Source: Macrostomum lignano
Taxonomy: Eukaryota
Reading direction: 5' to 3'
Assembly: GCA_002269645.1 (NCBI GenBank)
Contig: NIVC01000460.1
Span: 248,001-312,000, forward strand
DNA: 64,000 bases
Shown: positions 2,198 to 63,140 of the stretch, piece by piece
Layout: every line of letters begins with the position of its first letter
Numbering within the stretch: position 1 is the first letter of the stretch
Translations under genes and position numbers: made by a program
Notes under the pieces: model-generated
What the model was told of the DNA's origin: nothing
The model's input: the letters and a program-made list of their open reading frames with translations, nothing else
Databases searched by the model: none

Positions 2198-2430
2198 AAA
2201 GGCTGCGTACGGCTGTTCAGTCCAGGGACTGGGGGGTCACCAGGGGTCACCACACACACCCTTAATTACCCCAGCTAATGCTGGCACCCATTTTACAGCT
2301 GGGTGAACTGAAGCAATGCAGAGTTAAGCGTCTTGCTCAAGGACACTAATTGTTCGAGTAGTAGGTGGAGAATCGAACCTCCGACCTTTCAGTCGTGAGC
2401 CCAACGATCTAGCCACTAGGCTACAACCAT
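2198..2430 (-). mobile_element. tRNA-derived SINE with CORE-like central domain (family 1)
   Basis: The minus strand has an A box (TAGCCTAGTGG) and a B box (GGTTCGATTC). These are followed by GTGTCCTTGAGCAAGACGCTTAAC...CAGCTGTAAAATGGG, which resembles the MIR/CORE-SINE core. The 3' end GGACTGAACAGCCGTACGCAGCC is shared with the copy at 59129-59332. Confidence 0.8.
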
Positions 2431-2509: not shown

Positions 2510-3294
2510 TCACAGCTGATGCCTGTACCGGCACGAGGCGCCCCTGGTGCAGGCCCCCCGGTTCCGGCCGCCGTGGAACCACATCCGGCAGACGCCTCTG
2601 GGCGGATGCTGGAACCGGGGATGATGCGGCAGCTGCACGTGAGGCGGCGGGTGGCTCTGCGCGAACGACGACCCAGATGAGGATGAAGGGCCGCCGCCGC
2701 GGCCGCGACCGGCGCCACGAAAAGGATGCGGCTGATGGTGATGATGATGGTGATGGCCAGGGAATCCGAACGGAGGGCCTCCAGCGGCTGGAGGCGGCGG
2801 CGGAGGCGGCTGCTCAAAGTATTGAGGATTAGCCGCTGACGGTGGCGGCTGTATCGGCGGTTGCGAGGGTGGCCCCGAGGGGAACAGAGAGCGGAGCACC
2901 TGCGGGAACATCCCGCTAGCGGCCAGTTCGCCCCGCAGCGGCTCCAACAGCTGCCTGATCCTTTCCACTGTGAGGTCCTCAGACTGCGCGTGCAGGTCCG
3001 GATAGTGAGACTTAAGCAGATTCCACAGCATCTCTTTCACTGAGCTGCCGCTGCTTGAGGAAGCTGGGGCCGAGTCTGACGATGAAGCCGGCTGAGGCGG
3101 CTGTTGCTGAGGCAGCGGCGGCGGCTGTTGCTGGGGAGGCACTGAACTGCTTAAGCCGGGTGATGCCGCCGATATGCTGCTGGTAACCTGCTTCAGGATG
3201 TCCGCAATCTGTTGGGTATAGACAGGTGCACATAGGTATATTTAGGGTCTGAGAAATTACAGACAGACAGACAGACAGACAAACAAACAGACAA

Positions 3295-3335
<41 letters not shown>

Positions 3336-6003
3336 TACAAAAAGACACAGACAGACAGACAGACAGACAGACAGAGAGACAGACAGACAGAAAGACAGAA
3401 AGACAGACAAACAGACACTAAGACACAGACAGACAGACAGACAGACACACAGACAGGCAGACACTAAGACACAGACAGACAGACAAAGACAGACAGACAG
3501 CCAATCAAAGCAGGGTGCCACTCACCTCAGGCTTCAAGGAGATGCCGCCGCCACCCCCAGAGATGTCGCCAACAGCCAGCAGCTGATGACTGGCGGACTC
3601 AGTCGGCACCGCTGAAGTCGCTACTGCTGGCCCGTTGCTACTAGAAGTAGCAGCAGAAATTGCAGACGTAGCCGCTACTATTGCAGCAGAACTGGCAGTG
3701 GTTATTGTTGCAGAAATTGGGGCGCCAGTAGACAGCGCAGAAGCAGCCGCCTCTGTGGCCGCCGCCGCATCGGAGGGGTCGCTGGTCTCAGCTGCCGCCT
3801 CGCCGCCAGAGGATGTCGGAGCCGCACTTGCCGAGGTCGCGTTCTCTAGGGGAATAATGATGGGCTCTTCGGCGTCGAAATGCTCAACATCCGGCTCGGT
3901 GGCGCTGGCGGGAGTGGTGTCCAAGCTGAAGTAAATCACCTGCAGCATGGTCTCCTGCCGCTTGGCCTGCTTGGCCCGCTCCGTTGACTTTGCGCCCGAT
4001 CTGAAGGTTAGGGATTTTCGGGGTGCCCATTTAGAATCCCACATCCTTTTCCTTATCTAGAATCCCACATCCTTTTCCTTATCTAGAATCCCACATCCTC
4101 TTCCCCATCTAGAATCCCACATCCTTTTCCTATCTAGAATCCCACATTCTCTTCCCCATCTAGAATCCCACATTCTCTTCCCCATCTAGAATCCCACATT
4201 CTCTTCCCCATCTAGAATCCCACATTCTCTTCCCCATCTAGAATCCCACATCCTCTTCCCCATCTAGAATCCCACATTTTCTTCCCCATCTAAAATTCCA
4301 CATCCTCATCCCGTTTCAGAATCCCATCCTGCTCGCCACTCAGAATCCCATCCTGCTCGCCACTTAGAATCCCATCCTGCTCGCCACTTAGAATCCCATC
4401 CAGCTCGCCACTCAGAATCCTATCCTATTCCAGACGAACTCGGACAGACCCATAAAAAGATAGAAAGCAGCCAGGTGGCGCACCTATACGAGGCTGTGTA
4501 CTCAGGCATGCCGTGAATCCGGTGCGGCTTATACCACACAATAGCTTTAGCAACATCCGCTCCGAAGTCATCCGAACCGGAAGCGCCGCCTCGCCTGGCT
4601 CTGGTGAGCAACTCGCACTCGCGCTCGTGCTCCCGCCTGGCCATCTCCTCGACGCTGGAGCCGCTGGCATCGGCGCCGCCGGGAAGCTGCGGCGCAGACG
4701 AAATTGCCGACCGCCTCTCGGATGGGTCCAACTCAAAGTAAAAGACCTGCTCCAGAGCGTCGAAATGAGCCCAGGTGACTCGTTTTCGTTTGCTTTGCTG
4801 CTGTTGCTTTTGCGTCTGTTGCTCTTGAGCTTGCTCAGATTGCTTATCTTTCTGCTTCTTAGACTGGGCCTGCTTTGCACCGATTGGTTCAGCTGCGGCT
4901 TCCGGCTTCTCTGCTTTAACCGGCGCAGAAGCAGCAGACCCGTCCGAAACAGCAGACGGTGCTCGTTTTTTTCTAACAATTTTTGGCAAAGAGGACCGAC
5001 AAACGCCGAATAGCGAGTCCATGAGGAACTGGGAGCCGTCGGTTGACACGCCAGCAGGCTTCGCTACTGCAGCAGAGGAAGGAGAGGTTGGAGACGGCTT
5101 GGACGGAGGGACAGCGATCGGGTCCGCTTCTAAAGAGCTCGTCGGCCGAACTTCGATAGACGAGTGAATGGACTCGAGGTCGTTCTGCTGCTCTAATCTG
5201 GCCCGTTTTGCAGGCTTGCCAGATGAGGCGAACGCGGCAGAAGAAGCCAATTCTCCAGATAACTGTTTCTGTTGTTTTCTTTTAGATCCTGCCGGCTGCT
5301 GCTGGTCTTCAGACACCAACTCGTCCAAAGCCAGCAGGTTGGTATCGCGAAATGTTGCTGGCGCGGTTCTCACGGTGGAGGGCACCGACTGCTGGCGAAC
5401 TGACTCGGCCTCTCTATCCGGCTTCTCTTTTTTAGACTTCTTCTTTTTCTCTTTTTTGTCTTTCTTCTTTTTCTGTCGGCTAGTCGAAGACGCGGCATCT
5501 TCTGAGATGTCGTCGCCGCTTTCCGGGGCGGTGGCCGCAACCGCAGCAGCGGCCTCCTGCTCTGCGGCAGCCTTGATGCAGGCCAGCCACCGCTCCACCA
5601 CATTGGCAGCCAGCGGTGCCAGCTCCGAGTCAGCTGATTTGGCAATCTGCTTTACCACCTTGGCAGTGTTGTTGGCCTGCAGCATGTCAACGCCTACAGG
5701 CAAGCGGAGGAACACATCCAGCAAGAGTTTCTGCAAGGCGACGTTTGTTTCTGAGCAGGCTGTGTTAAGCCAATCATTGAGCATCTGCCAGCCGCCTTGA
5801 CGGCAAAACTCCGATAGCAGGCTGGAGTCTTCGGTGATCTTCAATATGTTGAGCATGATAGCCTTGCTAACCAGCTTGCTGGCCCGTTGCATCACGGCGT
5901 GCAGCTTGGCGACGGAGTCGCGCGATCGAATACCGCCGCGGTCATCGATGAGGCCCTCGCGGGCCAGCTGTCTGAAGAATTCCAAATGCTGGGCTTCCGA
6001 TTC
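2510..6003 (-). CDS. PPP1R10: PNUTS / protein phosphatase 1 regulatory subunit 10 homolog; exons 6003-4484, 4000-3526, 3208-2510 (897 codons plus stop; start codon unresolved)
   Basis: The N-terminal TFIIS-N-like domain ([10 protein letters not shown]...[22 protein letters not shown]) matches PNUTS. The PP1-docking motif [23 protein letters not shown] and the segment [14 protein letters not shown]...EPDVE...PIIIPLE also match, and the protein ends in a CCCH zinc finger ([24 protein letters not shown]). Splice phases (2, 0) are consistent at GT/AG junctions. Confidence 0.93.
3260..3500. repeat. (GACA)n microsatellite with GACACTAA variant units, in a PNUTS intron
   Basis: Direct reading; lies inside intron 3525-3209. 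Confidence 0.9.
4030..4425. repeat. Minisatellite, about 22-24-bp units (TAGAATCCCACATCCTCTTCCCCATC grading into AGAATCCCATCCTGCTCGCCACT), in a PNUTS intron
   Basis: Tandem units fill intron 4483-4001. Confidence 0.88.
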
Positions 6004-7030
6004 CTGCAATTTATTTGCGTTTAGATCGAGAATTTTTCATTATATATTCTATACTGGCCTACTTATAAACTTACTAAGTAGTGTAAATAGAGTTTTATCT
6101 ATTATTTAGCTAAATACAGAAAATCCATAGCTAGGTTAACAGATTCAGCAAAATGTCGGGACCATTTATCGAATTAAAAGCTACTAATTTAATTCAGATA
6201 AATAGCAAATTTCAATCCGCGAATTAGTCCCAGGCAGAACCATATTTTTTATAATCTGGCACGCAATCTACTCCCGAACTTACTCCACAATGCTAACAGG
6301 AGTAACGGGTTTTAATTTATTTTTGCGTGCATATTCGTGGCTTCAATTCGTTAATATTTTACTTTTTTCTTGGCTTTAGATCTTTACTGACAACAATAAC
6401 ATATTTTTATGTAATCACTATTTCATATTGGAAGACAAATTTATTTGAACTCATGGCACGCAGCCACAGCGTGTGTTGCAGCGGTGTGGAATGTTAAAAC
6501 AAGCGGAAGCTCCCCGCTATTTTTGGTCGCGCGCGTTAATTCCTCATAAATCAATAAATATAGATTGATGCAATAATTATTGATGGAATATATAGTGTCA
6601 CAGCTACGTATATAAACTTTATAGTAGGCACCATTAGAAGCTTTAAAAATTATTAATGAAAATGGAAGGATTAAATATGTACAAAGACACTGTACTTACT
6701 GATAGGGTTGTAAGTGTAAAACCCCATCGTGATATTACAAAAATTTACCAATTCAGCATGATAGGAAGCAACAAATGTAAACAGTGAGCATTTATTAGGT
6801 TGGAATGTGATTATAAAAAAATATACATTAGAAGCAAGATGCAAACAAACAAACTTAGTTGAACGAAATAAAACTTGATGTAATTTTGCTTTCAAAATTT
6901 CATTTTTATATCAGATAGAAGCGGTTAGGGTCATGAACTAACATGCTCAAATGTTGTTGTTGTTCTCAAACTGACTTATTCTTTAAAGTTTGTTGTAAAC
7001 AAAACAAAATAGAAAAGTGGTCGCACAGAA

Positions 7031-12694: not shown

Positions 12695-13599
12695 TCTTTA
12701 AGTGGACAAGTCTAAAGTAAAGGGCTCTAGAGCTGTAGATAAAAACGTAAATATTAAATGCACACTAATTCCTATCAGCAGTTTTGAGTGATACAGGCGT
12801 TAAAGAAGAAGCTAGCCCAACTGTAGTGTTAGTTAGCCGGAACACATTAAACAGGGAAAAGTATATTTTAATTTTATTCTTAATAAAAAAAATTAATTAC
12901 TTACTTGCAAATTAATTGATATAATTAGAAAACTACAGCCTTCTGTAGAGTTAAAAACATGGAGAACAGTTTATTTACAGTTTAATAAAAATCATTCGTT
13001 TTACCTTTTGTCGTCAGAAATAAATGATCCGAATAGATTATTTCACTGTTTCATCTTCAAGCGGGTTAAAAAATGTACAATTAGCGAATAACACGGCCAT
13101 GGCGAGCTGGTTGTTAAAAAAGTTTTTAGATCTTAATTTACGTAGTCTCTAATAATAAGCTAAGTTTGCTGTTGTTCTTACAGAATTCTAAAGAACATCA
13201 TGCAGGGAGAAAATGTGTTTAGAAAACCTATACTTTCACTGCATGATTTCATGGTGAGGCTTGATGCCCTCTGCCCAAGGTCTTTGCCCTTTCTCTGCGA
13301 TTGTCGGAGTAGCAGTACACATTGCATGGTCATGATCAGCTTGACGAATTCAGAGTCCAATTAAATGGCCGTTAATTCCCGATGCCTACTACGAGCTATT
13401 ACATGCCTGCAGAACTAATTCTGCAGTGCTTTTAGCTTTTAAGTAAGTCGTTCTATGACTTGGATTGAAAGAATTCAATCAATGAATTGAATGGATGCAT
13501 TCAAATTTAAAGTCCTTTACTAGCAATTAAAAAGCAGAGAAAAAGTGCCTTATTCGGTCATATTAACCTGCGGTGGCTCGTGCATATGGAAATTTATCT

Positions 13600-25112: not shown

Positions 25113-28100
25113 ATGACGGCTGTTTCAATATTGATATTGATGGTTGTCTCAACTCAACTGATTTCTGCCAAGTGGGCCCTGCACTATGACGGAGACCGAC
25201 ATGGTGAGCCGCCTTGATCTGCCTGTCTACTAATTTATCTATCTGTCAAAGTTACTATTGCTTCTTTATACTTCTCCATCAATTGCAGAATCCTTAACCA
25301 AGCTCGACCTGGACGAATCCTCGCTCTGCGCATCGAACCGCGACTGTCGGGCCGGCCGAGTCTGCCAACTGGTCGTCGACGTCGGCCGGAAGGGACGGTG
25401 CGTCTGCGCCAGCAGCAGCCACTGCAACCGTCGCCACCGCCACCACCGCCCAGTGTGTGGATCGGACGGCAGGCTGTACCCGAGCCACTGCCACCTGCAC
25501 CGGGCGGCCTGCGTATCCGGGACGAAAATTCGAATCCATCAACGAGGCTCCTGCGGCACTCATCGAGAGGCTGACGGCCACCGACGTCCGATAGTTGGAA
25601 CACGAGCAACTGGGAGAATTGGTGAGCAACGGGTATCAACGCCGACTGAAGGCAACGCGCCTGAGGAGAGGATAGCAGCACTCACTGAAGGGCCTGAGGA
25701 GAGGGTAGCAGCACTCACTGAAGGGCCTGAGGAGAGGGTAGCAGCACTCACTGAAGCGCCTGAGGAGAGGGTAGCAGCACTCACTGAAGCGCCTGAGGAG
25801 AGGGTAGCAGCACTCACTGAAGCGCCTGAGGAGAGGGTAGCAGCACTCACTGAAGCGCCTGAGGAGAGGGTAGCAGCACCCATTGAAGCGTCTGAGGAGA
25901 GAGAGGGTAGCAGCACCCATTGAAGCGCCTGAGGAGAGAGGGAGGGTAGCAGCACCCATTAAGCGCCTGAGGAGAGAGAGGGTAGCGGCACTCACTGAAG
26001 CGCCTGAGGAGAGAGAGGGTAGCGGCACCCACTGAAGCGCCTGAGGAGAGAGAGGGTAGCGGCACCCACTGAAGCGCCTGAGGAGAGAGAGGGTAGCGGC
26101 ACTCACTGAAGCGCCTGAGGAGAGAGAGGGTAGCAGCACTCACTGAAGCGCCTGAGGAGAGAGAGGGTAGCAGCACCCACTGAAGTGTCTGAGGAGAGAG
26201 AGGGTAACAGCACCCACTGAAGCGCCTGAGAAGAGAGAGGGTAGCGGCACTCACTGACCCACTGAAGCGCCTGAGGAGAGAGAGGGTAGCAGCACTCACT
26301 GAAGCGCCTGAGGAGAGAGAGGGTAGCGGCACTCACTGAAGTGCCTGAGGAGAGAGAGGGTAGCAGCACTCACTGAAGCGCCTGAGGAGAGAGAGGGTAG
26401 CAGCACTCACTGAAGTGCCTGAGGAGAGAGAGGGTAGCAGCACTCACTGAAGTGCCTGAGGAGAGAGAGGGTAGCAGCACTCACTGAAGTGCCTGAGGAG
26501 AGAGAGGGTAGCAGCACTCACTGAAGTGCCTGAGGAGAGAGAGGGTAGCAGCACTCACTGAAGTGCCTGAGGAGAGAGAGGGTAGCAGCACTCACTGAAG
26601 TGCCTGAGGAGAGAGAGGGTAGCAGCACTCACTGAAGTGCCTGAGGAGAGAGAGGGTAGCAGCACTCACTGAAGTGCCTGAGGAGAGAGAGGGTAGCAGC
26701 ACTCACTGAAGTGCCTGAGGAGAGAGAGGGTAGCAGCACTCACTGAAGTGCCTGAGGAGAGAGAGGGTAGCAGCACTCACTGAAGTGCCTGAGGAGAGAG
26801 AGGGTAGCAGCACTCACTGAAGCGCCTGAGGAGAGGGTAGCAGCACCTACAGAGCTGTATCATAATCCATTTTGTTAGTTGAATATTCTGCACATGAATT
26901 TGAGATTTAGTTTTACGAGTACCTAAGGTAGAATCGCTGTGCAAATGATAAAATCAGGCACATTTGAACTCAACGCAGCCCATTCTGAGAAGAAGAATGC
27001 ACCCTTTCATGGTGTATTTCTTGCAGTATTTGCCATCCACAAGCATATTTCTGTGTTTGCCAACTCAGTTGCAACCAGCTAACTGCAGTCAGCTAGTGGG
27101 TGCTCAGATAAGGAAGATAAGAAAAAAGTACTTTGAAGTGGGAGACGGGGAGTGAGGGAGAACCTCAGCATCAAGAGGCTGAGTAGCCGTCTCCTATAGG
27201 ATTTCAAAGTCAGAAGAGAAAATATCAGCTTTTCGGTCTTTTGCGGTCAAAATTTCAGTAGCAGTTTTCGATGAACTAGAAATCCACGGGAGCGCCAATG
27301 CGCAATCAAGTGGCGGGGGTCTTTCCCGAGGCTTGAATTACTTCACATGCTCAAAAAATGCCCCATAGTAGAAATCCAGAGGCTTAGTGCTTGCCAATTG
27401 TTTATTTGTTTGTTTTAGTTTGCCGAGGGGGGGGGGCGTTGAGAGCACTCGACAGCGGGCCTGACTTTCTAATTGTCAGTGACGTACACTCGATGTGGGT
27501 GGTTCCGGGCATCCGGACACGGCGGGGAGGCGTCGCCGTCCATTCCGATAACCCCTGGCGACCTCAGGCAGCTGGTGCTGCGGTGTCGCGCAGGGAGATC
27601 CGGTGGTGCCGGTGTCCGGAGAGTCCCAGGAGGTGGATGGTTGCCAGAACGTCAGAAAGGTTGGAAAGGTCCGGGTTTGGGCCGAGGTAGGTGTGCCTGT
27701 CCTGAGATGAAGTGCTCCGCATTCTCAACACCGGAGAATCAGAATGGACATTCCTCGGTATTGTTTATGAATCGTTGAACTCAAAGGTACCAGTACTATC
27801 ATTGCAACTTCCTGTAACTGTGAGCTGACCTTGAGTTGAAGGAATTATCATACTAGCTTGACACCTTTGCCCAGAGGCACTCTTATCTTGAAGGACTTTG
27901 GCTTCACCTCAGCAGCCCCAGAGACTGCTGCTGATCATCTTCTACATTAAAAAGCAGCTCGACAAGTGGCAGAGAAGGAGGGCGGTAGAAACAAACGGGA
28001 AAGTCGGCACGGGATACGACGCTGGGAGAGGAGAGGATTTTCAGAATTTTTTTTCTGGCGAGGATGGGGTATAGGGATCAGGGGGCTTGACTGGATTCCC

Positions 28101-51569: not shown

Positions 51570-53779
<2,210 letters not shown>

Positions 53780-54039
53780 ACTCGTTCCTGGCGGTCCGGG
53801 CATAACGGAATTCGCAACTTTCATTCAGATTTTTTAATTCTCTCCCTCATTCTTCACTGAGCTTATATGCGCATTTTTACTAGCGAATCGGCACGCACAG
53901 TTACTGCAATGTCAATTATCCATTCTTATTGCGGATTCTCAATTTTATTTTGTGTCTGTGCCTTAAATTGAGCGTCATAATTACACTTTTCTACGCTTCT
54001 CCCGGATTAGTATTACATAATTAGTTATTTGGTTAGTTT

Positions 54040-55008
<969 letters not shown>

Positions 55009-55794: not shown

Positions 55795-56061
55795 TGCTCA
55801 GGGCGTGGAGTCGCTGGGTTGGCAATTAGGCTTATCAATCGTTGGTTTGAGTTGATAGCCAAGATAAAATTAGACATGAGCTCAGAACAGAGGTACGAGG
55901 TTTCATGCTCAGTCTCTAACACTGACGGATAAGACGGACGTTATAAATGCGAATTGCTTCTGAAGCAGAAAACACTGTTCGATTCGCCGTATCATTGTGC
56001 TCTCCGTCAGATTTCTGGACATTTTTGTCGGTTTTTTAAGCGGACTCGCGCATTCAGTTTG
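55795..56061 (+). promoter_or_regulatory. Conserved promoter and non-coding first exon of EEP gene copy 1
   Basis: Collinear similarity to 58745-59062, including an identical 18-mer TTGGTTTGAGTTGATAGC, several GATA motifs and a GTGAGTTACA donor at 56062. The acceptor CCCACAG ends at 56208. Confidence 0.6.
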
Positions 56062-56231
56062 GTGAGTTACAGGAATGCCTTTTTAACTAACAATCAGAAT
56101 TAACATCTGAGGCTAAATTAGTTTTGTTCGTGGATCAGGGATCAGGGAATGAAGACAGGGACTGGGGTCACTGAATGGGGTCAGGGACTGCCTGACTGTG
56201 ACCCACAGTTCATCATCTACAAGGCTGAAGG

Positions 56232-57512
56232 ATGGCGGCCGGCGGAGGCGAAGGCGTCAAGTTCGTGGCCCTGGCCATCAACGCGGATGCTTCAAAGCGA
56301 GAAGAGCAACTGGAAAGAGACAAACTGGCTAGCGGACTGCACGAAATCGCACAGCTGGCGGCAGCACAGGCAGCCATGCCGGAGAAGGCGGAAGCCCTGG
56401 CGGCTTTGCACGTCTCACAGCATGCGTCCAGGCAGGCGAAGGCGGCTATCGAGGCGGCAAATGAGGAGGGGAGTGAGGTCACTCGGGCAACAGTTGCAAC
56501 AGTTAAAGAAAAATGGCAAAAGACAATGGAAGCAGCAAAACTTGCTACTCAGCATTCTGAGACTGCAATGCGAGAGGCGATGGAGGCAGCAGAACTGACA
56601 CCTGATAAAGTACAACCCAGCATCGTTACGATTTCTGAGATGAGCGGAGAGGATGCGCTAGAAACATTTCGAGAAAAATTAGGTACAAGTTGGAAAGTGC
56701 TCTCGCACAGTTTCAAAGCTAAATCTGCAGATAGAATAGTCACAGCTTACAACACAGATATCTGGGAATTGCAATCCAATTATCCCGCATCCGACGAGGG
56801 CCACTATCTCTTGACGAAACTTAAGATGACAGCGAATAATATGGTCTTGGCCTACTTCTCTGTGCATCTGCCACACAAGAGTGGCAAAGAAAAGGCTTAC
56901 GACTGTATTAAAACAGCTATTAAGGACTGCTGTAAGGATGCAGACTTGGTCATGATCGGTGGCGATTGGAATATGACGCCACAGGACATAGAAGATCAGT
57001 TCAAGGATTCGACAAGCCCAATCGACAAATCTAAGCTAGCCTTTATCACAGGTCGAACAAACGAAGGCAGCATTGCGAAAGTGATTGACAACTTCGCCCT
57101 GATTTCTCAACAGCAGCGATACACTGCAGGCTTCAGCGAGAAGAGGATAATGAATGAGATGCAAGTCGAGAAGTACACGACTCATGCTCCGATCTGCGCA
57201 GAGGTTCGATTCACCCCGAGCAAGAAGTCTTCCAACAGCAGGGCCAACACGCCTTCCAGCAGCAAGGCCAACACGCCTTCCAGCAGCAAGGCCAACACGC
57301 CTTCCAGCAGCAAGGCCAACACGCCTTCCAGCAGCAGGGCCAACACGCCTTCCAGCAGCAAGGCCAACACGCCTTCCAGCAGCAAGGCCAACACGCCTTC
57401 CAGCAGCAAGGCCAACACGCCTTCCAGCAGCAAGGCCAACACGCCTTCCAGCAGCAGGGCCAACACGCCTTCCAGCAGCAGGGCCAAAAGGCAAATCAAC
57501 AAAGAGCCTTAA
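56232..57512 (+). CDS. Stand-alone endonuclease/exonuclease/phosphatase (EEP, DNase I/APE fold) protein, copy 1 (426 aa), with a C-terminal (K/R)ANTPSSS x10 tail
   Basis: EEP motifs appear in order: LAINAD (N), IVTISE (E), SVHLP (H), MIGGDWN (D-N), IDNF (D) and TTHAPI (H). The CDS is uninterrupted and paralogous to 60173-61240, and no RT domain follows. Confidence 0.8.
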   Translation: MAAGGGEGVKFVALAINADASKREEQLERDKLASGLHEIAQLAAAQAAMPEKAEALAALHVSQHASRQAKAAIEAANEEGSEVTRATVATVKEKWQKTMEAAKLATQHSETAMREAMEAAELTPDKVQPSIVTISEMSGEDALETFREKLGTSWKVLSHSFKAKSADRIVTAYNTDIWELQSNYPASDEGHYLLTKLKMTANNMVLAYFSVHLPHKSGKEKAYDCIKTAIKDCCKDADLVMIGGDWNMTPQDIEDQFKDSTSPIDKSKLAFITGRTNEGSIAKVIDNFALISQQQRYTAGFSEKRIMNEMQVEKYTTHAPICAEVRFTPSKKSSNSRANTPSSSKANTPSSSKANTPSSSKANTPSSSRANTPSSSKANTPSSSKANTPSSSKANTPSSSKANTPSSSRANTPSSSRAKRQINKEP

Positions 57513-57949
57513 AATCTCTAGCAATTGCAAAATAGAAGAAATTGACACTGCCTTCATTATTCTTTTTGTAATTTGGGTTTTATTGGTTTCTTAGATCAAC
57601 GGTTTCCTGGAAATATGAACAATTCTCAGAGAAAATTAGAGAGAATGGCTGTTGGAAAATTTTCAAATGAAATGGTCTGCAGAGCTTTAAAAAATTTTCT
57701 CTTGTTTTTATTGATTAATTTTAATTGCATGCCAAATTTATGGGTCATTTCCTTGTACGCAAACTTAGTTTTATTCAAATAGCGTGTTAAAAAAACTCAT
57801 CATCATACAGACCTGTATGCCCATGCGCTAGTGCTTTGAATACTTGTTTAGTTCTATGGCATGATTTGGCATAGAAAATCATTAACTAGAATACCTACAG
57901 TGCCCAAGCGAAGTGCCCACAGCATCACAGTGCCCACATAATCCTGGAT

Positions 57950-58410
57950 TTGATCGGAAAGGATGGGACTGGGCAGAATGTGAATGGACAGGATGTAGCT
58001 AGAAAGGATGGGACTGGACAGGATGGGACTGGACAGGATGGGACTGGACAGGATGGGACTGGACAGGATGGGACTGGACAGGATGGGACTGGACAGGATG
58101 GGACTATATAGGATTAGGCTGGATAGGATGGGACTGGATAGGATGGGACTGGATAGGATGGGACTGGATAGGATGGGACTGGACAGGATGGGACTGGACA
58201 GGATGGGACTGGACAGGATGGGACTGGAAAGGATGGGACTGGAAAGGATGGGACTGGAAAGGATGGGACTGGACAGGATTAGGCTGGATAGGATGTAGCT
58301 AGAAAGGATGGGACTGGACAGGATGTGAATGGACAGGATGTAGCTAGAAAGGATGAGACTGGGCAGGATGGGACTGGACAGGATGTGAATGGACAGGATG
58401 AGGCTGAATA
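57950..58410. repeat. Minisatellite, 15-bp unit GGATGGGACTGGACA
   Basis: Direct reading; lies between the two EEP genes. Confidence 0.92.
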
Positions 58411-58744
58411 GGATGGGACGAAACAGCTGTTTGTGTTTAGTCTTTGAGTCAAGACAAAGAAAGGGAAAAATGGAATGGCCAAGTCTGTCTTAAAAGCGGT
58501 TTTTAATCAAGGAAAATCAACGTAGATTTGCTGCTGCTTTCAACTCCTGCTGCATCTAAAACAATTTTCGAAGCGAAGTGTCATCATTTGAATTTTTTAT
58601 GAAAGCGTGCTTCTCAAAATTCAACATTCGAAGGTTTGAATTCAGTGAAACATTTTGAGCAAAACTAAAAAATTAAACTCAAAAGCTAATTTTAAAAAAC
58701 ATACTCAAAATTTCGACAGAAAGTGTGCTCAGAACACTTTCTGA

Positions 58745-59062
58745 GCTCAGGGTACGGAGTCGCACGTTTGGCAAGATAGCCTATCGAACCCATTTGGTTT
58801 GAGTTGATAGCGGTTTATGCAACTGCTTTGAGTCAGTGAGGCATCGATAGATAAGCGAAAGGGAAAACAGCAATAATGGGTATGCTCTCTGAATAGAGAA
58901 AGCTTTAAGTGGCAATTTCCAAATTAGAAGGAAAATTCAGAGGCTATAATATGCGACTTGCAGAAGATAATACTCACATTTGCTGCTGCGTTATTGCGTC
59001 CACCGTCAGCTTTCTGAGGTTCATTTTAAAAGGTTTTAAGTGGACCCTTGCAGTTCAACGAG
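58745..59062 (+). promoter_or_regulatory. Conserved promoter and non-coding first exon of EEP gene copy 2
   Basis: Homologous to 55795-56061. The donor GTGAGTTACA is at 59063 and the acceptor GGTTTCAG ends at 60130. Confidence 0.6.
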
Positions 59063-59128
59063 GTGAGTTACACGTGTCTTGATACGTATTTCAAGTGTTA
59101 ACGAGTAAAAATGTCTTATACAGTACAT

Positions 59129-59332
59129 GGTAGCGGGCTGTAGCCTAGTGGTAAGAACGTCGGACTCACGATTTGAAGGTTGGGGGTTCGATTCTCGACT
59201 CCACTGTAACAATTTGTGGAGCTTTACATGCTTCTTCTCACCCAGCTGTTAAATGGGTACTAGCATTAGGTTGGATAATTGAAGGTGTGTGGCGCCCCCA
59301 GTCTATGGACTGAACAGCCGTACGCAGCCTTC
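59129..59332 (+). mobile_element. tRNA-derived CORE-like SINE (family 1), in the 5' UTR intron of EEP copy 2
   Basis: A box TAGCCTAGTGG, B box GGTTCGATTC and CACCCAGCTGTTAAATGGGTAC. The 3' end matches the copy at 2198-2430; part of the core is deleted. Confidence 0.8.
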
Positions 59333-59374
59333 AGATGCGCCAAGCGATAGCTGCGGCTGAGCTGTCGCCTACAC

Positions 59375-60035
59375 ATCTGTAATCATAGGTGTATTCATTG
59401 GTGTAATTGTTGGTGTAATCAATGGTGTAATTGTTGGTGCCATTATTAGTGTAATCATAGGTGTAATCATAGGTGTAATCATAGGTGTAATCATAGGTGT
59501 AATCATAGGTGTAATCATAGGTGTAATCATTGTTGTAATCACAGGTGTAATCATAGGTGTAATCATAGGTGTAATCATAGGTGTAATCATTGTTGTAATC
59601 ATAGGTGTAATCATAGGTGTAATCATAGGTGTAATCATGGGTGTAAGCAATGGTGTAATTATGGGTGTAATCAATGGTATAATCATGGGTGTAATCAATG
59701 GTGTAATCATGGGTGTAATTAATGGTGTGATTATGGGTGTAATCATTGTTGTAATCATAGGTGTAATCATAGGTGTAATCATAGGTGTAATCATAGGTGT
59801 AATCAATGGTGTAAACATGGGTGTAATCAATGGTATAATCATGGGTGTAATCAATGGTGTAATCATGGGTGTAATTAATGGTGTGATTATGGGTGTAATC
59901 AGTGGTGTAATCATGGGTGTAATTAATGGTGTGATTATGGGTGTAATCAGTGGTGTAATCAGTGGTGTAATCATGGGTGTAATCATTGGTGTAATCGTAG
60001 GCATAATCATAGGGGTAATCATAGGTGTAATCATT
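59375..60035. repeat. Minisatellite, 12-bp unit GGTGTAATCAT(A/G)
   Basis: Direct reading; intronic; source of the spurious ITPM/GVIM ORFs. Confidence 0.93.
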
Positions 60036-60172
60036 GTTTGTTCACTATAAGCGACTTAGTGAGGCATAACAGATCAGAGACAGACGGGGCTTACTCGTTA
60101 TGAGCATGTTTATATACATTTCGGTTTCAGGTTGCAAAGTCAGTGTTTAATATTCTTTTAACGACGTCCAGA

Positions 60173-61240
60173 ATGGCAACCTCTGGATACACTTCAGCAT
60201 GTAGCTTCTTGACGTTGGCTATTAACGCGGATGAGTCACACAGGCTTTTGGGGCTGAGGAAGATAGGACTTAGTGGCATGGTGGAAAAAATTGTGGCAAC
60301 GGAGGACAACGCAACAGCAGTTACACTCTGGAATCCGGATAGTTATCGTCTGACCGGGAATACAAGAAAATTGTCAAGACATCATGACGCAACGCAGCAG
60401 AGAAAGCGTTCAGTTAGCTTAGGCTCAGTTGGCCCGCAGTCTCCGATTGTTAGCTTAATTACAATTTCTGAATTGAGCGGAGTGGAAACAGAGAAGAATT
60501 TCGCCTCTCAATTAACTGAAAACATAAGAGGAAAATGGCAGAGTTTCTCATACAGATTAGGCCAACGTCCTGCGGATACAATTCTTACAGCATTCAACAC
60601 TGAACTCTGGGAATCGGAGGATGAGTGTTTCACCGTATCGGACAAGGGCCGCTATCTGTTAACGAAGCTCAGGATGAAGGCCAATGGAATGATCTTGGCC
60701 AACTTCTCTGTGCATCTGCCTTATACTCACGAAAACGATAGGTTCCGATGTTATGATCTCTTAAAGAAGGCGATCGATGGCCTTTGCAAGGGCACCCCAT
60801 CACCAGACTTGATTATGATTGGTGGCGACTGGAACATGGAGCCTGATGACATCCGCAAGTATATTGCTCGTGACGTTTTTCTAGCCTTTGAAAATAGTGA
60901 TGGCAGTACAAGCAGAACAGACTATCCAATCGACAACTTCGCACTGATCTGGCCACCACGCTCGAGACTACTGAATATGCCAGAGTTGGGTGAACGGCTT
61001 ATAATGAGAAATCTGCAAGACATATTGACAAAGCATGCTCCGATCTTGGCGGAGGTTCGACTTGCAATGACGTCTGAGCCTGAAATGGAGGGACTAAGCA
61101 ATCAGATGGCAAATGTGCAGTTGGGTACTCAGCATTCTCAATGGAATAATTCGGCTGGTCAGTACTCGGAGTGTGGGCATCCGGCACCCATGTCTCAAAG
61201 CTGTCCACCGCCGAATCAGTCCTACGGAGGATGGTATTGA
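60173..61240 (+). CDS. Stand-alone EEP (DNase I/APE fold) protein, copy 2 (355 aa)
   Basis: The ATG at 60173 follows a spliced 5' UTR. Motifs are LAINAD, LITISE, SVHLP, MIGGDWNMEPDD, IDNF and TKHAPI. It shares long blocks with copy 1 (YLLTKL.M.AN.M.LA.FSVHLP) and has an uninterrupted CDS. Confidence 0.8.
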   Translation: MATSGYTSACSFLTLAINADESHRLLGLRKIGLSGMVEKIVATEDNATAVTLWNPDSYRLTGNTRKLSRHHDATQQRKRSVSLGSVGPQSPIVSLITISELSGVETEKNFASQLTENIRGKWQSFSYRLGQRPADTILTAFNTELWESEDECFTVSDKGRYLLTKLRMKANGMILANFSVHLPYTHENDRFRCYDLLKKAIDGLCKGTPSPDLIMIGGDWNMEPDDIRKYIARDVFLAFENSDGSTSRTDYPIDNFALIWPPRSRLLNMPELGERLIMRNLQDILTKHAPILAEVRLAMTSEPEMEGLSNQMANVQLGTQHSQWNNSAGQYSECGHPAPMSQSCPPPNQSYGGWY

Positions 61241-61999: not shown

Positions 62000-63140
62000 T
62001 AGATCTCATCTCTCTCCTGTCTCATCTCTCTATCCTGTCTCATCTCTCCCCTGTCTCATCTCTCCCCTGTCTCATCTCTCCCCTGTCTCATCTCTCCCCT
62101 GTCTCATCTCTCCCCTGTCTCATCTCTCCCCTGTCTCATCTCTCCCCTGTATCATCTCTCCCCTGTCTCATCTCTCCCCTTTCTCATCTCTCCCCTGTCT
62201 CATCTCTCCCCTGTATCATCTCTCCCCTGTCTCATCTCTCCCCTGTCTCATCTCTCCCCTGTCTCATCTCTCCCCTGTCTCATCTCTCCCCTGTCTCATC
62301 TCTCCCCGGTCTCATCTCTCCCCTGTCTCATCTCTCCCCTGTCTCATCTCTTCTGTGTCTCATCTCTCTCCTGTCTCATCTCTCTATCCTGTCTCATCTC
62401 TCCCCGGTCTCATCTCTCCCCTGTCTCATCTCTCCCCTGTCTCATCTCTCCCCGGTCTCATCTCTCCCCGGTCTCATCTCTCCCCTGTCTCATCTCTCCC
62501 CTGTCTCATCTCTCCCCTGTCTCATCTCTCCCCGGTCTCATCTCTCCCCTGTCTCATCTCTCCCCTGTCTCATCTCTCCCCTGTCTCATCTCTCCCCTGT
62601 CTCATCTCTCCCCTGTCTCATCTCTCCCCTGTCTCATCTCTCCCCTGTCTCATCTCTCCCCTGTCTCATCTCTCCCCTGTCTCATCTCTCCCCTGTCTCA
62701 TCTCTCCCCTGTCTCATCTCTCCCCTGTCTCATCTCTCCCCGGTCTCATCTCTCCCCTGTCTCATCTCTCCCCTGTCTCATCTCTCCCCTGTCTCATCTC
62801 TCCCCTGTCTCATCTCTCCCCTGTCTCATCTCTCCCCTGTCTCATCTCTCCCCTGTCTCATCTCTCCCCTGTCTCATCTCTCCCCTGTCTCATCTCTCCC
62901 CTGTCTCATCTCTCCCCTGTCTCATCTCTCCCCTGTCTCATCTCTCCCCTGTCTCATCTTTCCCCTGTCTCATCTTTCCCCTGTCTCATCTCTTCTGTGT
63001 CTCATCTCTCTCCTGTCTCATCTCTCTATCCTGTCTCATCTCTCCCCTGTCTCATCTCTCCCCGGTCTCATCTCTCCCCTGTCTCATCTCTCCCCGGTCT
63101 CATCTCTCCCTGGTCTCATCTCTCCCCTGTCTCATCTCTC
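62000..63140. repeat. Minisatellite, 16-bp unit CCTGTCTCATCTCTCC
   Basis: Direct reading; source of the spurious ORF at 62355-63245. Confidence 0.95.

Follow-up and report, generated by a model that had tools for sequence, protein, structure and literature searches.

We analyzed a 64,000-nucleotide stretch of the genome of the flatworm Macrostomum lignano (GenBank assembly GCA_002269645.1, contig NIVC01000460.1, positions 248,001 to 312,000 of the forward strand; hereafter, the window), in which a preliminary description, made from the sequence alone, had picked out a tandem pair of genes with the fold of the endonuclease/exonuclease/phosphatase (EEP) superfamily and of no recognizable animal subfamily. 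Between 54 and 64 kb, the window holds two long nonrepeat open reading frames (ORFs), both on the plus strand (gene 1 and gene 2; Table 1), and the ORF list together with Tandem Repeats Finder (TRF) identifies the remaining ORFs of at least 80 aa in this interval as translated tandem arrays. We consider it likely that the two genes encode active, intracellular, stand-alone EEP phosphoesterases, that is, metal-dependent phosphodiesterases. As such, they belong to a well-known enzyme kind and are not a new kind of system; what is unusual is the taxonomic spread of their subfamily, which is patchy and takes in protists, virus-like environmental DNA, and one flatworm.

Both proteins combine a catalytic core with an insertion and a C-terminal tail. 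In gene 1, the core is compact (residues 9 to 17 and 131 to 329) and carries the catalytic residues N17, D19, E136, H212, D245, N247, D286, and H318, the counterparts in gene 2 being N18, D20, E100, H181, D219, N221, D254, and H288. These residues lie in the motif contexts LAINAD, TISE, FSVHLP, GGDWNM, IDNFAL, and T(T/K)HAPI, in agreement with the N, E, H, GDxN, D, and final H listed in the preliminary description, and they align with those of a further M. lignano protein, BOX15_Mlig011052g1 (P0001 in our data set), and of 86 distant relatives. Strand 1, with the catalytic Asn, starts at residue 9 or 10, which leaves no room for a signal peptide, as had also been noted before, and the N termini align with the mature N terminus of DNase I; lacking a signal peptide, the enzymes would therefore act inside the cell. 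Strands 1 (Asn) and 2 (Glu) are 25 to 30 residues apart in BOX15_Mlig011052g1 and most relatives. Here, gene 1 contains an insertion of ∼90 residues (29 to 119), modeled as three long helices with a predicted local distance difference test (pLDDT) score of ∼70 to 85, and gene 2 contains one of ∼70 residues (21 to 91), for which model confidence is low. The probability that both insertions stay open by chance is estimated at ∼5e-4, calculated as (61/64)^90 × (61/64)^70, and since they are open and in frame, we take them as coding. The coding sequences (CDSs) are collinear with those of the relatives, so that both genes would have intronless CDSs, as had been proposed. The C-terminal tail of gene 1, which contains an in-frame minisatellite, is disordered in the model (pLDDT below 50), and that of gene 2 is rich in Q, S, and P. 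A subthreshold Pfam match of gene 1 to "Cornifin" stems from the minisatellite tail and is spurious.

Evidence for an EEP fold and a probably active enzyme

A profile of the three flatworm sequences, run exhaustively against 1.84 billion representatives, returned 83 proteins at an E value of ≤1e-3 and 24 at ≤1e-10, with BOX15_Mlig011052g1 at the top (2e-125) and the next match at only 5e-22. The family alignment, on which all motif counts are based, comprises 89 sequences (three M. lignano paralogs and 86 distant relatives) and shows the signature aINxDgsNR ... TxSE ... GKY ... SVHLPHKxGR ... GDFNxxP ... TTxxGxxIDN ... [FLY][ST]HxPI. Across these 89 sequences, the catalytic columns I to V are conserved at 95 to 100%: motif I has N and D in 76 each of the 79 sequences that extend over these positions, motif II has E in 84 of 85, motif III has H in all 89, motif IV has G in all 88 and D and N in 87 of 88 each, and motif V has D in 80 of 83; the H of motif VI is found in 80 of 85. 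This delineates an uncharacterized subfamily of EEPs, made up of at least 80 sequence clusters, that falls below the Pfam thresholds and is without a studied member; a literature search on the locus tag and on the family found nothing.

The relationship to the EEP superfamily emerges from both profile and structure comparisons. Against the PDB, the 89-sequence profile matched 3g6s (3.7e-11), 3mpr and 4c1r (6e-7 each), 3l1w (1.7e-6), DNase I (1.5e-5), a LINE-1 endonuclease variant (3.6e-5), nocturnin (1.6e-4), and ExoIII (5e-4), with the N, E, H, GDFN, D, and H of the family aligned onto the matching motifs of 3g6s, 3mpr, 3l1w, and DNase I. A single-sequence PDB search gave matches to PDZ proteases at an E value of 0.02 only, which are spurious. 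The AlphaFold2 model of gene 1 built from the 89-sequence alignment has a mean pLDDT of 75.7, with the core blocks at 87 to 97, and supersedes an earlier model from 3 sequences (pLDDT of 54) that had served as a lead only. Searched with Foldseek, it matched about 190 EEP chains at an E value of ≤1e-3, with E values of 1e-9 to 1e-7 and target-normalized template modeling (TM) scores of 0.5 to 0.6 for more than 180 chains. Bacterial EEPs, EEPD1, neutral sphingomyelinase, DNase I, TDP2, LINE-1 endonuclease, and nocturnin all matched about equally well, at 9 to 17% identity, predicted EEPs of giant viruses and phages matched at an equal level, and the lower-confidence model of gene 2 led to the same families. 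Profile and model together thus place both genes in the EEP superfamily, with a predicted DNase I-like four-layer alpha/beta sandwich fold, and bear out the preliminary description on this point as well as on the subfamily: judged by sequence and modeled structure, no characterized subfamily claims the two proteins, every known EEP being a weak match, and their own subfamily is an uncharacterized one.

If the two proteins work as the enzymology of APE1, DNase I, TDP2, and CCR4-type enzymes would predict, they would be hydrolases of phosphoester bonds that follow the standard EEP mechanism. The Asn of motif I and the Glu of motif II would coordinate one divalent metal; the final His would activate the attacking water, with the Asp of motif V keeping it in orientation; and the scissile phosphate would be bound by the Asp and Asn of GDxN together with the His of motif III.

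Four observations weigh against the view that these are active EEP phosphoesterases. (i) Neither gene 1, gene 2, nor BOX15_Mlig011052g1 matches PF03372 (gathering score of 24.5 bits) at an E value of ≤10, so that EEP membership rests on the profile and structure evidence; of the relatives, 17 of 32 do match PF03372 at an E value of ≤0.1 (best, 6.7e-9), and a direct scan gave no usable NCBIfam match for the two genes. (ii) Both genes are missing from the protein sets searched and were either overlooked or are not expressed: exact, indexed, and exhaustive searches of about 15 billion proteins returned no exact or near-identical record of either. The two appear to be unannotated in public gene sets, although the product of a neighboring M. 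lignano gene is on record there; annotation at the locus seems to have a gap, and our analysis adds both genes to the M. lignano gene set. (iii) The Asp of the canonical SDH triplet of motif VI is replaced, the triplet being TTH in gene 1 and TKH in gene 2, which might alter metal binding or activity. (iv) The best profile matches are bacterial EEPs, among which the only characterized one, 4c1r, is a sugar phosphatase, so that the substrate may well be other than nucleic acid.

With respect to the third point, the preliminary description read the triplets correctly. In the family alignment, the residue before the final His is S or T in 56 of the 89 sequences, D in 6, and H in 6; the lack of the SDH Asp is thus a family-wide trait and not a peculiarity of genes 1 and 2. 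Work on APE1 D308 mutants is said to show that the Asp before the last His aids metal binding in some EEPs and is not strictly required. That Ser or Thr takes its place throughout the family points to an altered metal site more than to a loss of activity.

Paralogy, predicted gene structure, and genomic setting

Genes 1 and 2 are adjacent paralogs, as first described, with 32% identity over 334 columns by BLASTP (E value of 1e-46) and 42% over 253 ungapped columns. BOX15_Mlig011052g1 (293 aa; E value of 4e-20 in the indexed protein search) sits on another contig (L001); with identities over ungapped columns of 45% to gene 1 and 37% to gene 2, it is a third paralog and not an ortholog. All three paralogs begin with Met-Ala, encoded by ATGGC, and tblastn found no third copy of gene 1 or gene 2 within the window. 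By the Nei-Gojobori method, nonsynonymous divergence (dN) among the three is 0.55 to 0.66 (∼0.56 for the tandem duplication), and synonymous divergence (dS) is 2.5 for gene 1/gene 2 and incalculable for the other two pairs, that is, saturated; the tandem duplication is therefore old. For comparison, the 42% identity of the tandem pair contrasts with 90% for the apparent homeolog pair of a neighboring gene (see below). The crude dN/dS of gene 1/gene 2 is ∼0.23, a value that, given the saturation, is uninformative on fast evolution, and the catalytic columns are fully conserved, so the "fast-evolving" family of the preliminary description found no support. Taken with the invariant active site, this ratio argues for long-term purifying selection on both genes. 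We infer that the two copies may have diverged in function or regulation: they differ in their strand 1-2 insertions, in their low-complexity tails, and in the residue that follows the PH of motif III, which is Glu in gene 2 and Lys or Arg in 75 of the 89 family sequences, while both appear to retain a common promoter and 5′ untranslated region (5′UTR) architecture.

The same data bear on the idea that the pair are unexpressed relics, either decaying duplicates or what is left of a domesticated LINE (long interspersed nuclear element) endonuclease without its reverse transcriptase (RT). Such relics would fit the absence from the public M. lignano protein sets, the repeat-rich surroundings (with a minisatellite in the tail of gene 1 and both a short interspersed element [SINE] and a satellite within the intron predicted for gene 2), and the presence of LINE-1 endonuclease among the profile matches. 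Yet, LINE-1 endonuclease matches no better than other EEPs, ORFs of 355 to 426 codons have remained intact despite saturated synonymous divergence, all catalytic residues are retained, the in-frame insertions are open, and promoter/5′UTR blocks as well as splice signals are conserved between the two genes. Moreover, in line with the preliminary description, the ORF list, the repeat scan, and tblastn of the window revealed neither an RT domain nor the termini of a transposable element: no nonrepeat ORF of at least 80 aa, and hence no RT ORF, lies beside the two genes, and they carry neither a poly(A) tract nor a target-site duplication. We regard the relic explanation as very improbable.

The 5′ gene structures (Table 1) were read from the sequence and from the paired alignment of the upstream regions, with start sites that are approximate (TATA-like box plus ∼30 nt). 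Each gene is preceded by a conserved noncoding block that is unique to the pair, no copy being found elsewhere in the window or in the contig of BOX15_Mlig011052g1, and that is probably a shared promoter or enhancer element. A dispersed repeat is ruled out by this occurrence at genes 1 and 2 only, and the block shows no significant RNA fold (z scores of −0.95 and +0.72). WGATAR sites are clustered in both upstream regions, at 55832, 55853, and 55862 for gene 1 (three in 36 bp, 55832 to 55867) and at 58774, 58805, and 58849 for gene 2 (three in 80 bp, 58774 to 58854), against a background of ∼1 site per 410 bp, and one such site (TTGATAGC) falls inside the conserved block. This clustering may hint at GATA-driven expression, for example, in the intestine or gut.

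A start ∼30 nt past the TATA-like box plausibly gives both genes an ATG-free, noncoding first exon of ∼85 nt. The exons have in common the blocks CCGTCAG.TTTCTG, TTTTAAG.GGAC, and G|GTGAGTTACA, the last of which is the identical predicted donor of both genes (GGTGAGTTACA donors, at 56062 and 59063); the acceptor AGs (56207-8 and 60129-30) lie 23 nt (gene 1) and 42 nt (gene 2) before the ATG. BOX15_Mlig011052g1 has an analogous intron on its own contig (9875 to 9998; GTTAGT...CTGCAG) that ends 2 nt before its ATG. The spliced noncoding first exon of the preliminary description is plausible in the light of this architecture, but a start of that exon at 55795 is unsupported over a TATA-based one at ∼55975, which would leave no upstream ATG. 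M. lignano also trans-splices, and the predicted acceptors could therefore be sites of spliced-leader addition; a query with the spliced leader of M. lignano had no match in the window or in the contig of BOX15_Mlig011052g1.

Table 1. Coordinates of the two EEP genes and of their predicted 5′ features in the window
Feature	Start	End	Strand	Remarks
Conserved upstream noncoding block, gene 1	55785	55859	+	CACTTTCT..GCTCAGGG..GGAGTCGC..TTGGCAA..TTGGTTTGAGTTGATAGC
TATA-like box, gene 1	55942	55947	+	Putative; TATAAA; 120 nt upstream of predicted donor
Noncoding exon 1, gene 1	55975	56061	+	Predicted; start approximate; without ATG
5′UTR intron, gene 1	56062	56208	+	Predicted; 147 nt; GTGAGT ... 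CCCACAG
CDS, gene 1	56232	57512	+	426 aa; ORF, paralogy, AlphaFold2, Foldseek, catalytic residues
24-nt minisatellite in frame, tail of gene 1	57229	57487	+	TRF; 10.8 copies, 97% matches; (ANTPSSS[K/R])n
Conserved upstream noncoding block, gene 2	58734	58811	+	Homolog of the gene 1 block; 75.6% identity, ∼78 bp
TATA-like box, gene 2	58945	58951	+	Putative; TATAATA; 118 nt upstream of predicted donor
Noncoding exon 1, gene 2	58978	59062	+	Predicted; start approximate; without ATG
5′UTR intron, gene 2	59063	60130	+	Predicted; 1068 nt; donor GTGAGT, acceptor TTTCAG
CDS, gene 2	60173	61240	+	355 aa from first ATG; ORF opens at 60143

A tRNA-derived, SINE-like element (59121 to 59380, plus strand) and a 12-nt tandem array (59378 to 60034) enlarge the intron predicted for gene 2. 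The element has a degenerate tRNA-like head that scores 16.7 bits with the Rfam tRNA model, below threshold, and in which ARAGORN detected no tRNA; at gathering thresholds, Rfam had no match in the whole window. Further copies are found in the window at 2199 to 2428 (minus strand; 70% identical) and on an M. lignano contig (76 to 90%); the window shares this repeat with M. lignano contig NIVC01001626, and the contig of BOX15_Mlig011052g1 carries it at 13405 to 13560.

More generally, tandem arrays of short period (units of 4 to 20 nt, up to 1.1 kb) crowd the window, for instance at 52002 to 52528, 53004 to 53221, 54021 to 55008, 57956 to 58419, 59378 to 60034, and 62004 to 63140, with many more upstream. 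These arrays account for most of the long "ORFs" and for the large GC-skew swings of the window, and the unique sequence of each EEP gene is enclosed by them. Of the other genes, the ORF at 4420 to 6009 (minus strand) encodes a TFIIS-N/Med26-type domain. Its product matches one UniRef protein of M. lignano at 100% identity and another M. lignano protein at 90%; the latter we take to be the homeolog, given the published polyploidy of M. lignano. The full identity and the SINE-like repeat shared with contig NIVC01001626 identify the window as M. lignano DNA. The ORF adjoins a CCCH-finger ORF (2510 to 3142, minus strand), the two being arranged like PNUTS/PPP1R10. The ORF at 25258 to 25923 (plus strand) combines a Kazal-type protease-inhibitor domain with a following (EERVAALTEAP)n repeat, and the ORF at 52345 to 52803 (plus strand) encodes an EF-hand and begins within a TGTC array; both are probably exons of ordinary host genes.

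Distribution and origin of the family

Among the relatives, the named ones are transcriptome sequences from the green alga Mantoniella beaufortii and from Lapot gusevi, presumably a rhizarian, and M. lignano is the sole named animal; the remaining relatives come from Logan, ENA, and JGI assemblies without a taxonomic label. Their genomic contexts fall into different kinds. One contig (L016) is compact, eukaryotic, and picoeukaryote-like, with ubiquitin, a split Arf gene, RCC1, EMC4, and JmjC; others (L006, L009, and L010/L011) are sparse and eukaryote-like. A third kind, represented by a 68-kb ENA contig (L002), two JGI contigs (L013/L014), and a Logan contig (L017), is densely packed with ORFs on both strands, of which almost none has a Pfam match, including proteins of 938 and 1182 aa; Pfam likewise had no match among the neighbors of the relative on the ENA contig (P0030). 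From their gene density and ORFan content, and without a hallmark gene shown, these dense contigs look like fragments of large DNA viruses. IMG/VR contained no relatives of P0030 or of the corresponding protein on the JGI contigs (P0084).

Some relatives carry extensions that set them apart within the family. Several of them (P0004, P0008, P0009, and P0018, with P0027 similar) have an N-terminal Cys/His-rich motif, MxC(G/S)CCG..(x6-8)..GCSC..(x3-8)..SHxC, before the EEP core, possibly a small module that binds zinc or is acylated, which the flatworm genes lack, and P0030 has a strongly basic, SPxK-rich tail.

This distribution raises the question of how the family came to a flatworm. The preliminary description considered the pair as possibly acquired, which is plausible with M. 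lignano as the sole named animal, but a transfer is not demonstrated, since most relatives are unlabeled. In this reading, the Macrostomum lineage would have received the family horizontally, the donor being a protist or a giant virus, and would then have added 5′UTR introns and a host promoter and duplicated the gene to at least three loci; such a transfer concerns the origin of the genes and is compatible with their being active phosphoesterases. The only close match of the pair is M. lignano's own paralog, all others having E values of ≥5e-22, the named sources are protists, the contexts include a picoeukaryote-like contig and virus-like dense ones, the CDSs are intronless, and the three flatworm copies are 37 to 45% identical to one another compared to 17 to 34% to any other member. 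If the family was acquired, this mutual closeness makes a single entry followed by duplication the simplest course. On the other hand, some of the unlabeled Logan contigs could be animals, the dense contigs come without a shown viral hallmark gene and IMG/VR without relatives, GC content at third codon positions is only slightly below that of the neighbors (0.49 to 0.54 compared to 0.57 to 0.76), the paralogs are old, and ancient vertical inheritance with massive loss provides an alternative. On balance, we find a transfer somewhat doubtful. More specific, and in our opinion quite unlikely, is the full scenario in which Macrostomum captured an EEP nuclease of a protist or giant virus, supplied it with host promoters and 5′UTR introns, and turned it into at least three paralogs with new helical insertions.

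Were horizontal transfer true, the locus would offer a clear-cut example of gene capture in a model flatworm that regenerates and is tractable by RNA interference, and capture with domestication would make it a rare documented virus- or protist-to-flatworm case with a new intracellular nuclease activity. Irrespective of origin, the substrate of any one member would inform a clade that extends across protists, probable giant viruses, and one flatworm.

Substrate and comparison with known EEP systems

Provided that the two genes encode active intracellular EEP phosphoesterases, their substrate could well be nucleic acid, a tentative assignment that we hold at slightly under even and prefer to a small molecule. 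The hints are weak and consist of the profile matches to DNase I, ExoIII, and LINE-1 endonuclease, the basic tail of P0030, and the Cys/His-rich N termini of some relatives. The alternative, in which the same fold acts on something other than nucleic acid, such as a sugar phosphate, a phosphoinositide, a sphingomyelin-type lipid, or a dinucleotide, draws on three observations: (i) the Bacteroides EEP group, which is top in the profile search, contains the mannosyl-6-phosphatase 4c1r; (ii) neutral sphingomyelinase is the best single-family PDB match of the three-flatworm profile (8j2f, E value of 0.056) and ranks fifth in Foldseek; and (iii) nocturnin, which acts on NADPH, also matches. At 9 to 17% identity, however, these proteins match only as well as DNase I, TDP2, and LINE-1 endonuclease do, a membrane anchor or lipid-binding segment is not evident in the flatworm proteins, and the basic or Cys-rich extensions of the relatives suit nucleic acid binding better. 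We therefore see a non-nucleic-acid substrate as possible, if on the unlikely side.

The preliminary description went further and suggested a role in defense or genome surveillance, for which we find no support: both genes are lone single-domain genes with no partner genes beside them, and the single match to the PADLOC defense models (E value of 0.021) falls in the low-complexity tail of gene 1 and is not meaningful. Nor does the "undescribed system" that it saw in the pair fit a pair of single-domain enzymes, which is not a multipart system and whose paralog BOX15_Mlig011052g1 is already labeled an endonuclease/exonuclease/phosphatase protein in UniRef.

Among the known EEPs that share the fold and catalytic motifs of the pair, several can be compared with it individually. 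CdtB-type proteins are no family-level match: 9 of 32 relatives, and none of the window proteins, give sub-threshold NCBIfam matches to them (best E value of 0.0012), and CdtB is a secreted bacterial subunit that works with partners, whereas genes 1 and 2 are eukaryotic nuclear genes with predicted 5′UTR introns and have neither signal peptide nor partners. TDP2, a compact EEP that works inside the cell, shares with the pair the NxD of motif I and the His of motif III, and it gives many Foldseek matches (E values of ∼1e-8), but its profile match is poor (0.038), it has a UBA domain, it keeps SDH, and it is only 9 to 12% identical; no test identified the pair as the M. lignano TDP2 ortholog, and neither UBA nor any other Pfam domain was found in genes 1 and 2. 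The LINE-1/L1-type endonucleases share a minimal EEP core of ∼235 aa (Foldseek E value of 2e-8) and differ in their signature as well as in coming with the RT and element termini that genes 1 and 2, two copies in 64 kb, lack.

EEPD1, SMPD2 (neutral sphingomyelinase 2), nocturnin, and ExoIII/APE1 share the general fold and the local GDxN(M/I)xP and H...P motifs with the pair, all at an equally low match level, and the helix-hairpin-helix, membrane, or leucine-zipper parts found in this group are missing from genes 1 and 2. ExoIII/APE1 in addition lacks the motif III His that is invariant in the family, only the GDxN segment aligning to 1ako (E values of 5e-4 to 5e-3). DNase I has the same fold and the full N/E/H/GDFN/D/H set (Foldseek E value of 1e-8; root mean square deviation of 4.5), yet it is a secreted protein with a signal peptide, disulfides, and Ca2+ sites, and at 13% identity there is no orthology.

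The closest resemblance is to the Bacteroides-type EEPs (BVU_0621 [3g6s], 3mpr, 3l1w, and BT3783 [4c1r]), which are also single-domain proteins, provide the best profile matches and the top Foldseek match, and align with the pair one to one in motifs I to VI. These proteins are nevertheless only 12 to 14% identical, keep SDH, and have longer loops (about 260 to 290 aa compared to a core of ∼210 aa). The mannosyl-6-phosphatase BT3783 acts on a sugar phosphate, which need not be the substrate of the present family. The signatures also differ: the Bacteroides-type enzymes are without PHKxGR and TT..IDN, whereas the subfamily that includes genes 1 and 2 is marked by a PHKxGR that follows the His of motif III, by IDN in motif V, and by [ST]H in place of DH in motif VI.

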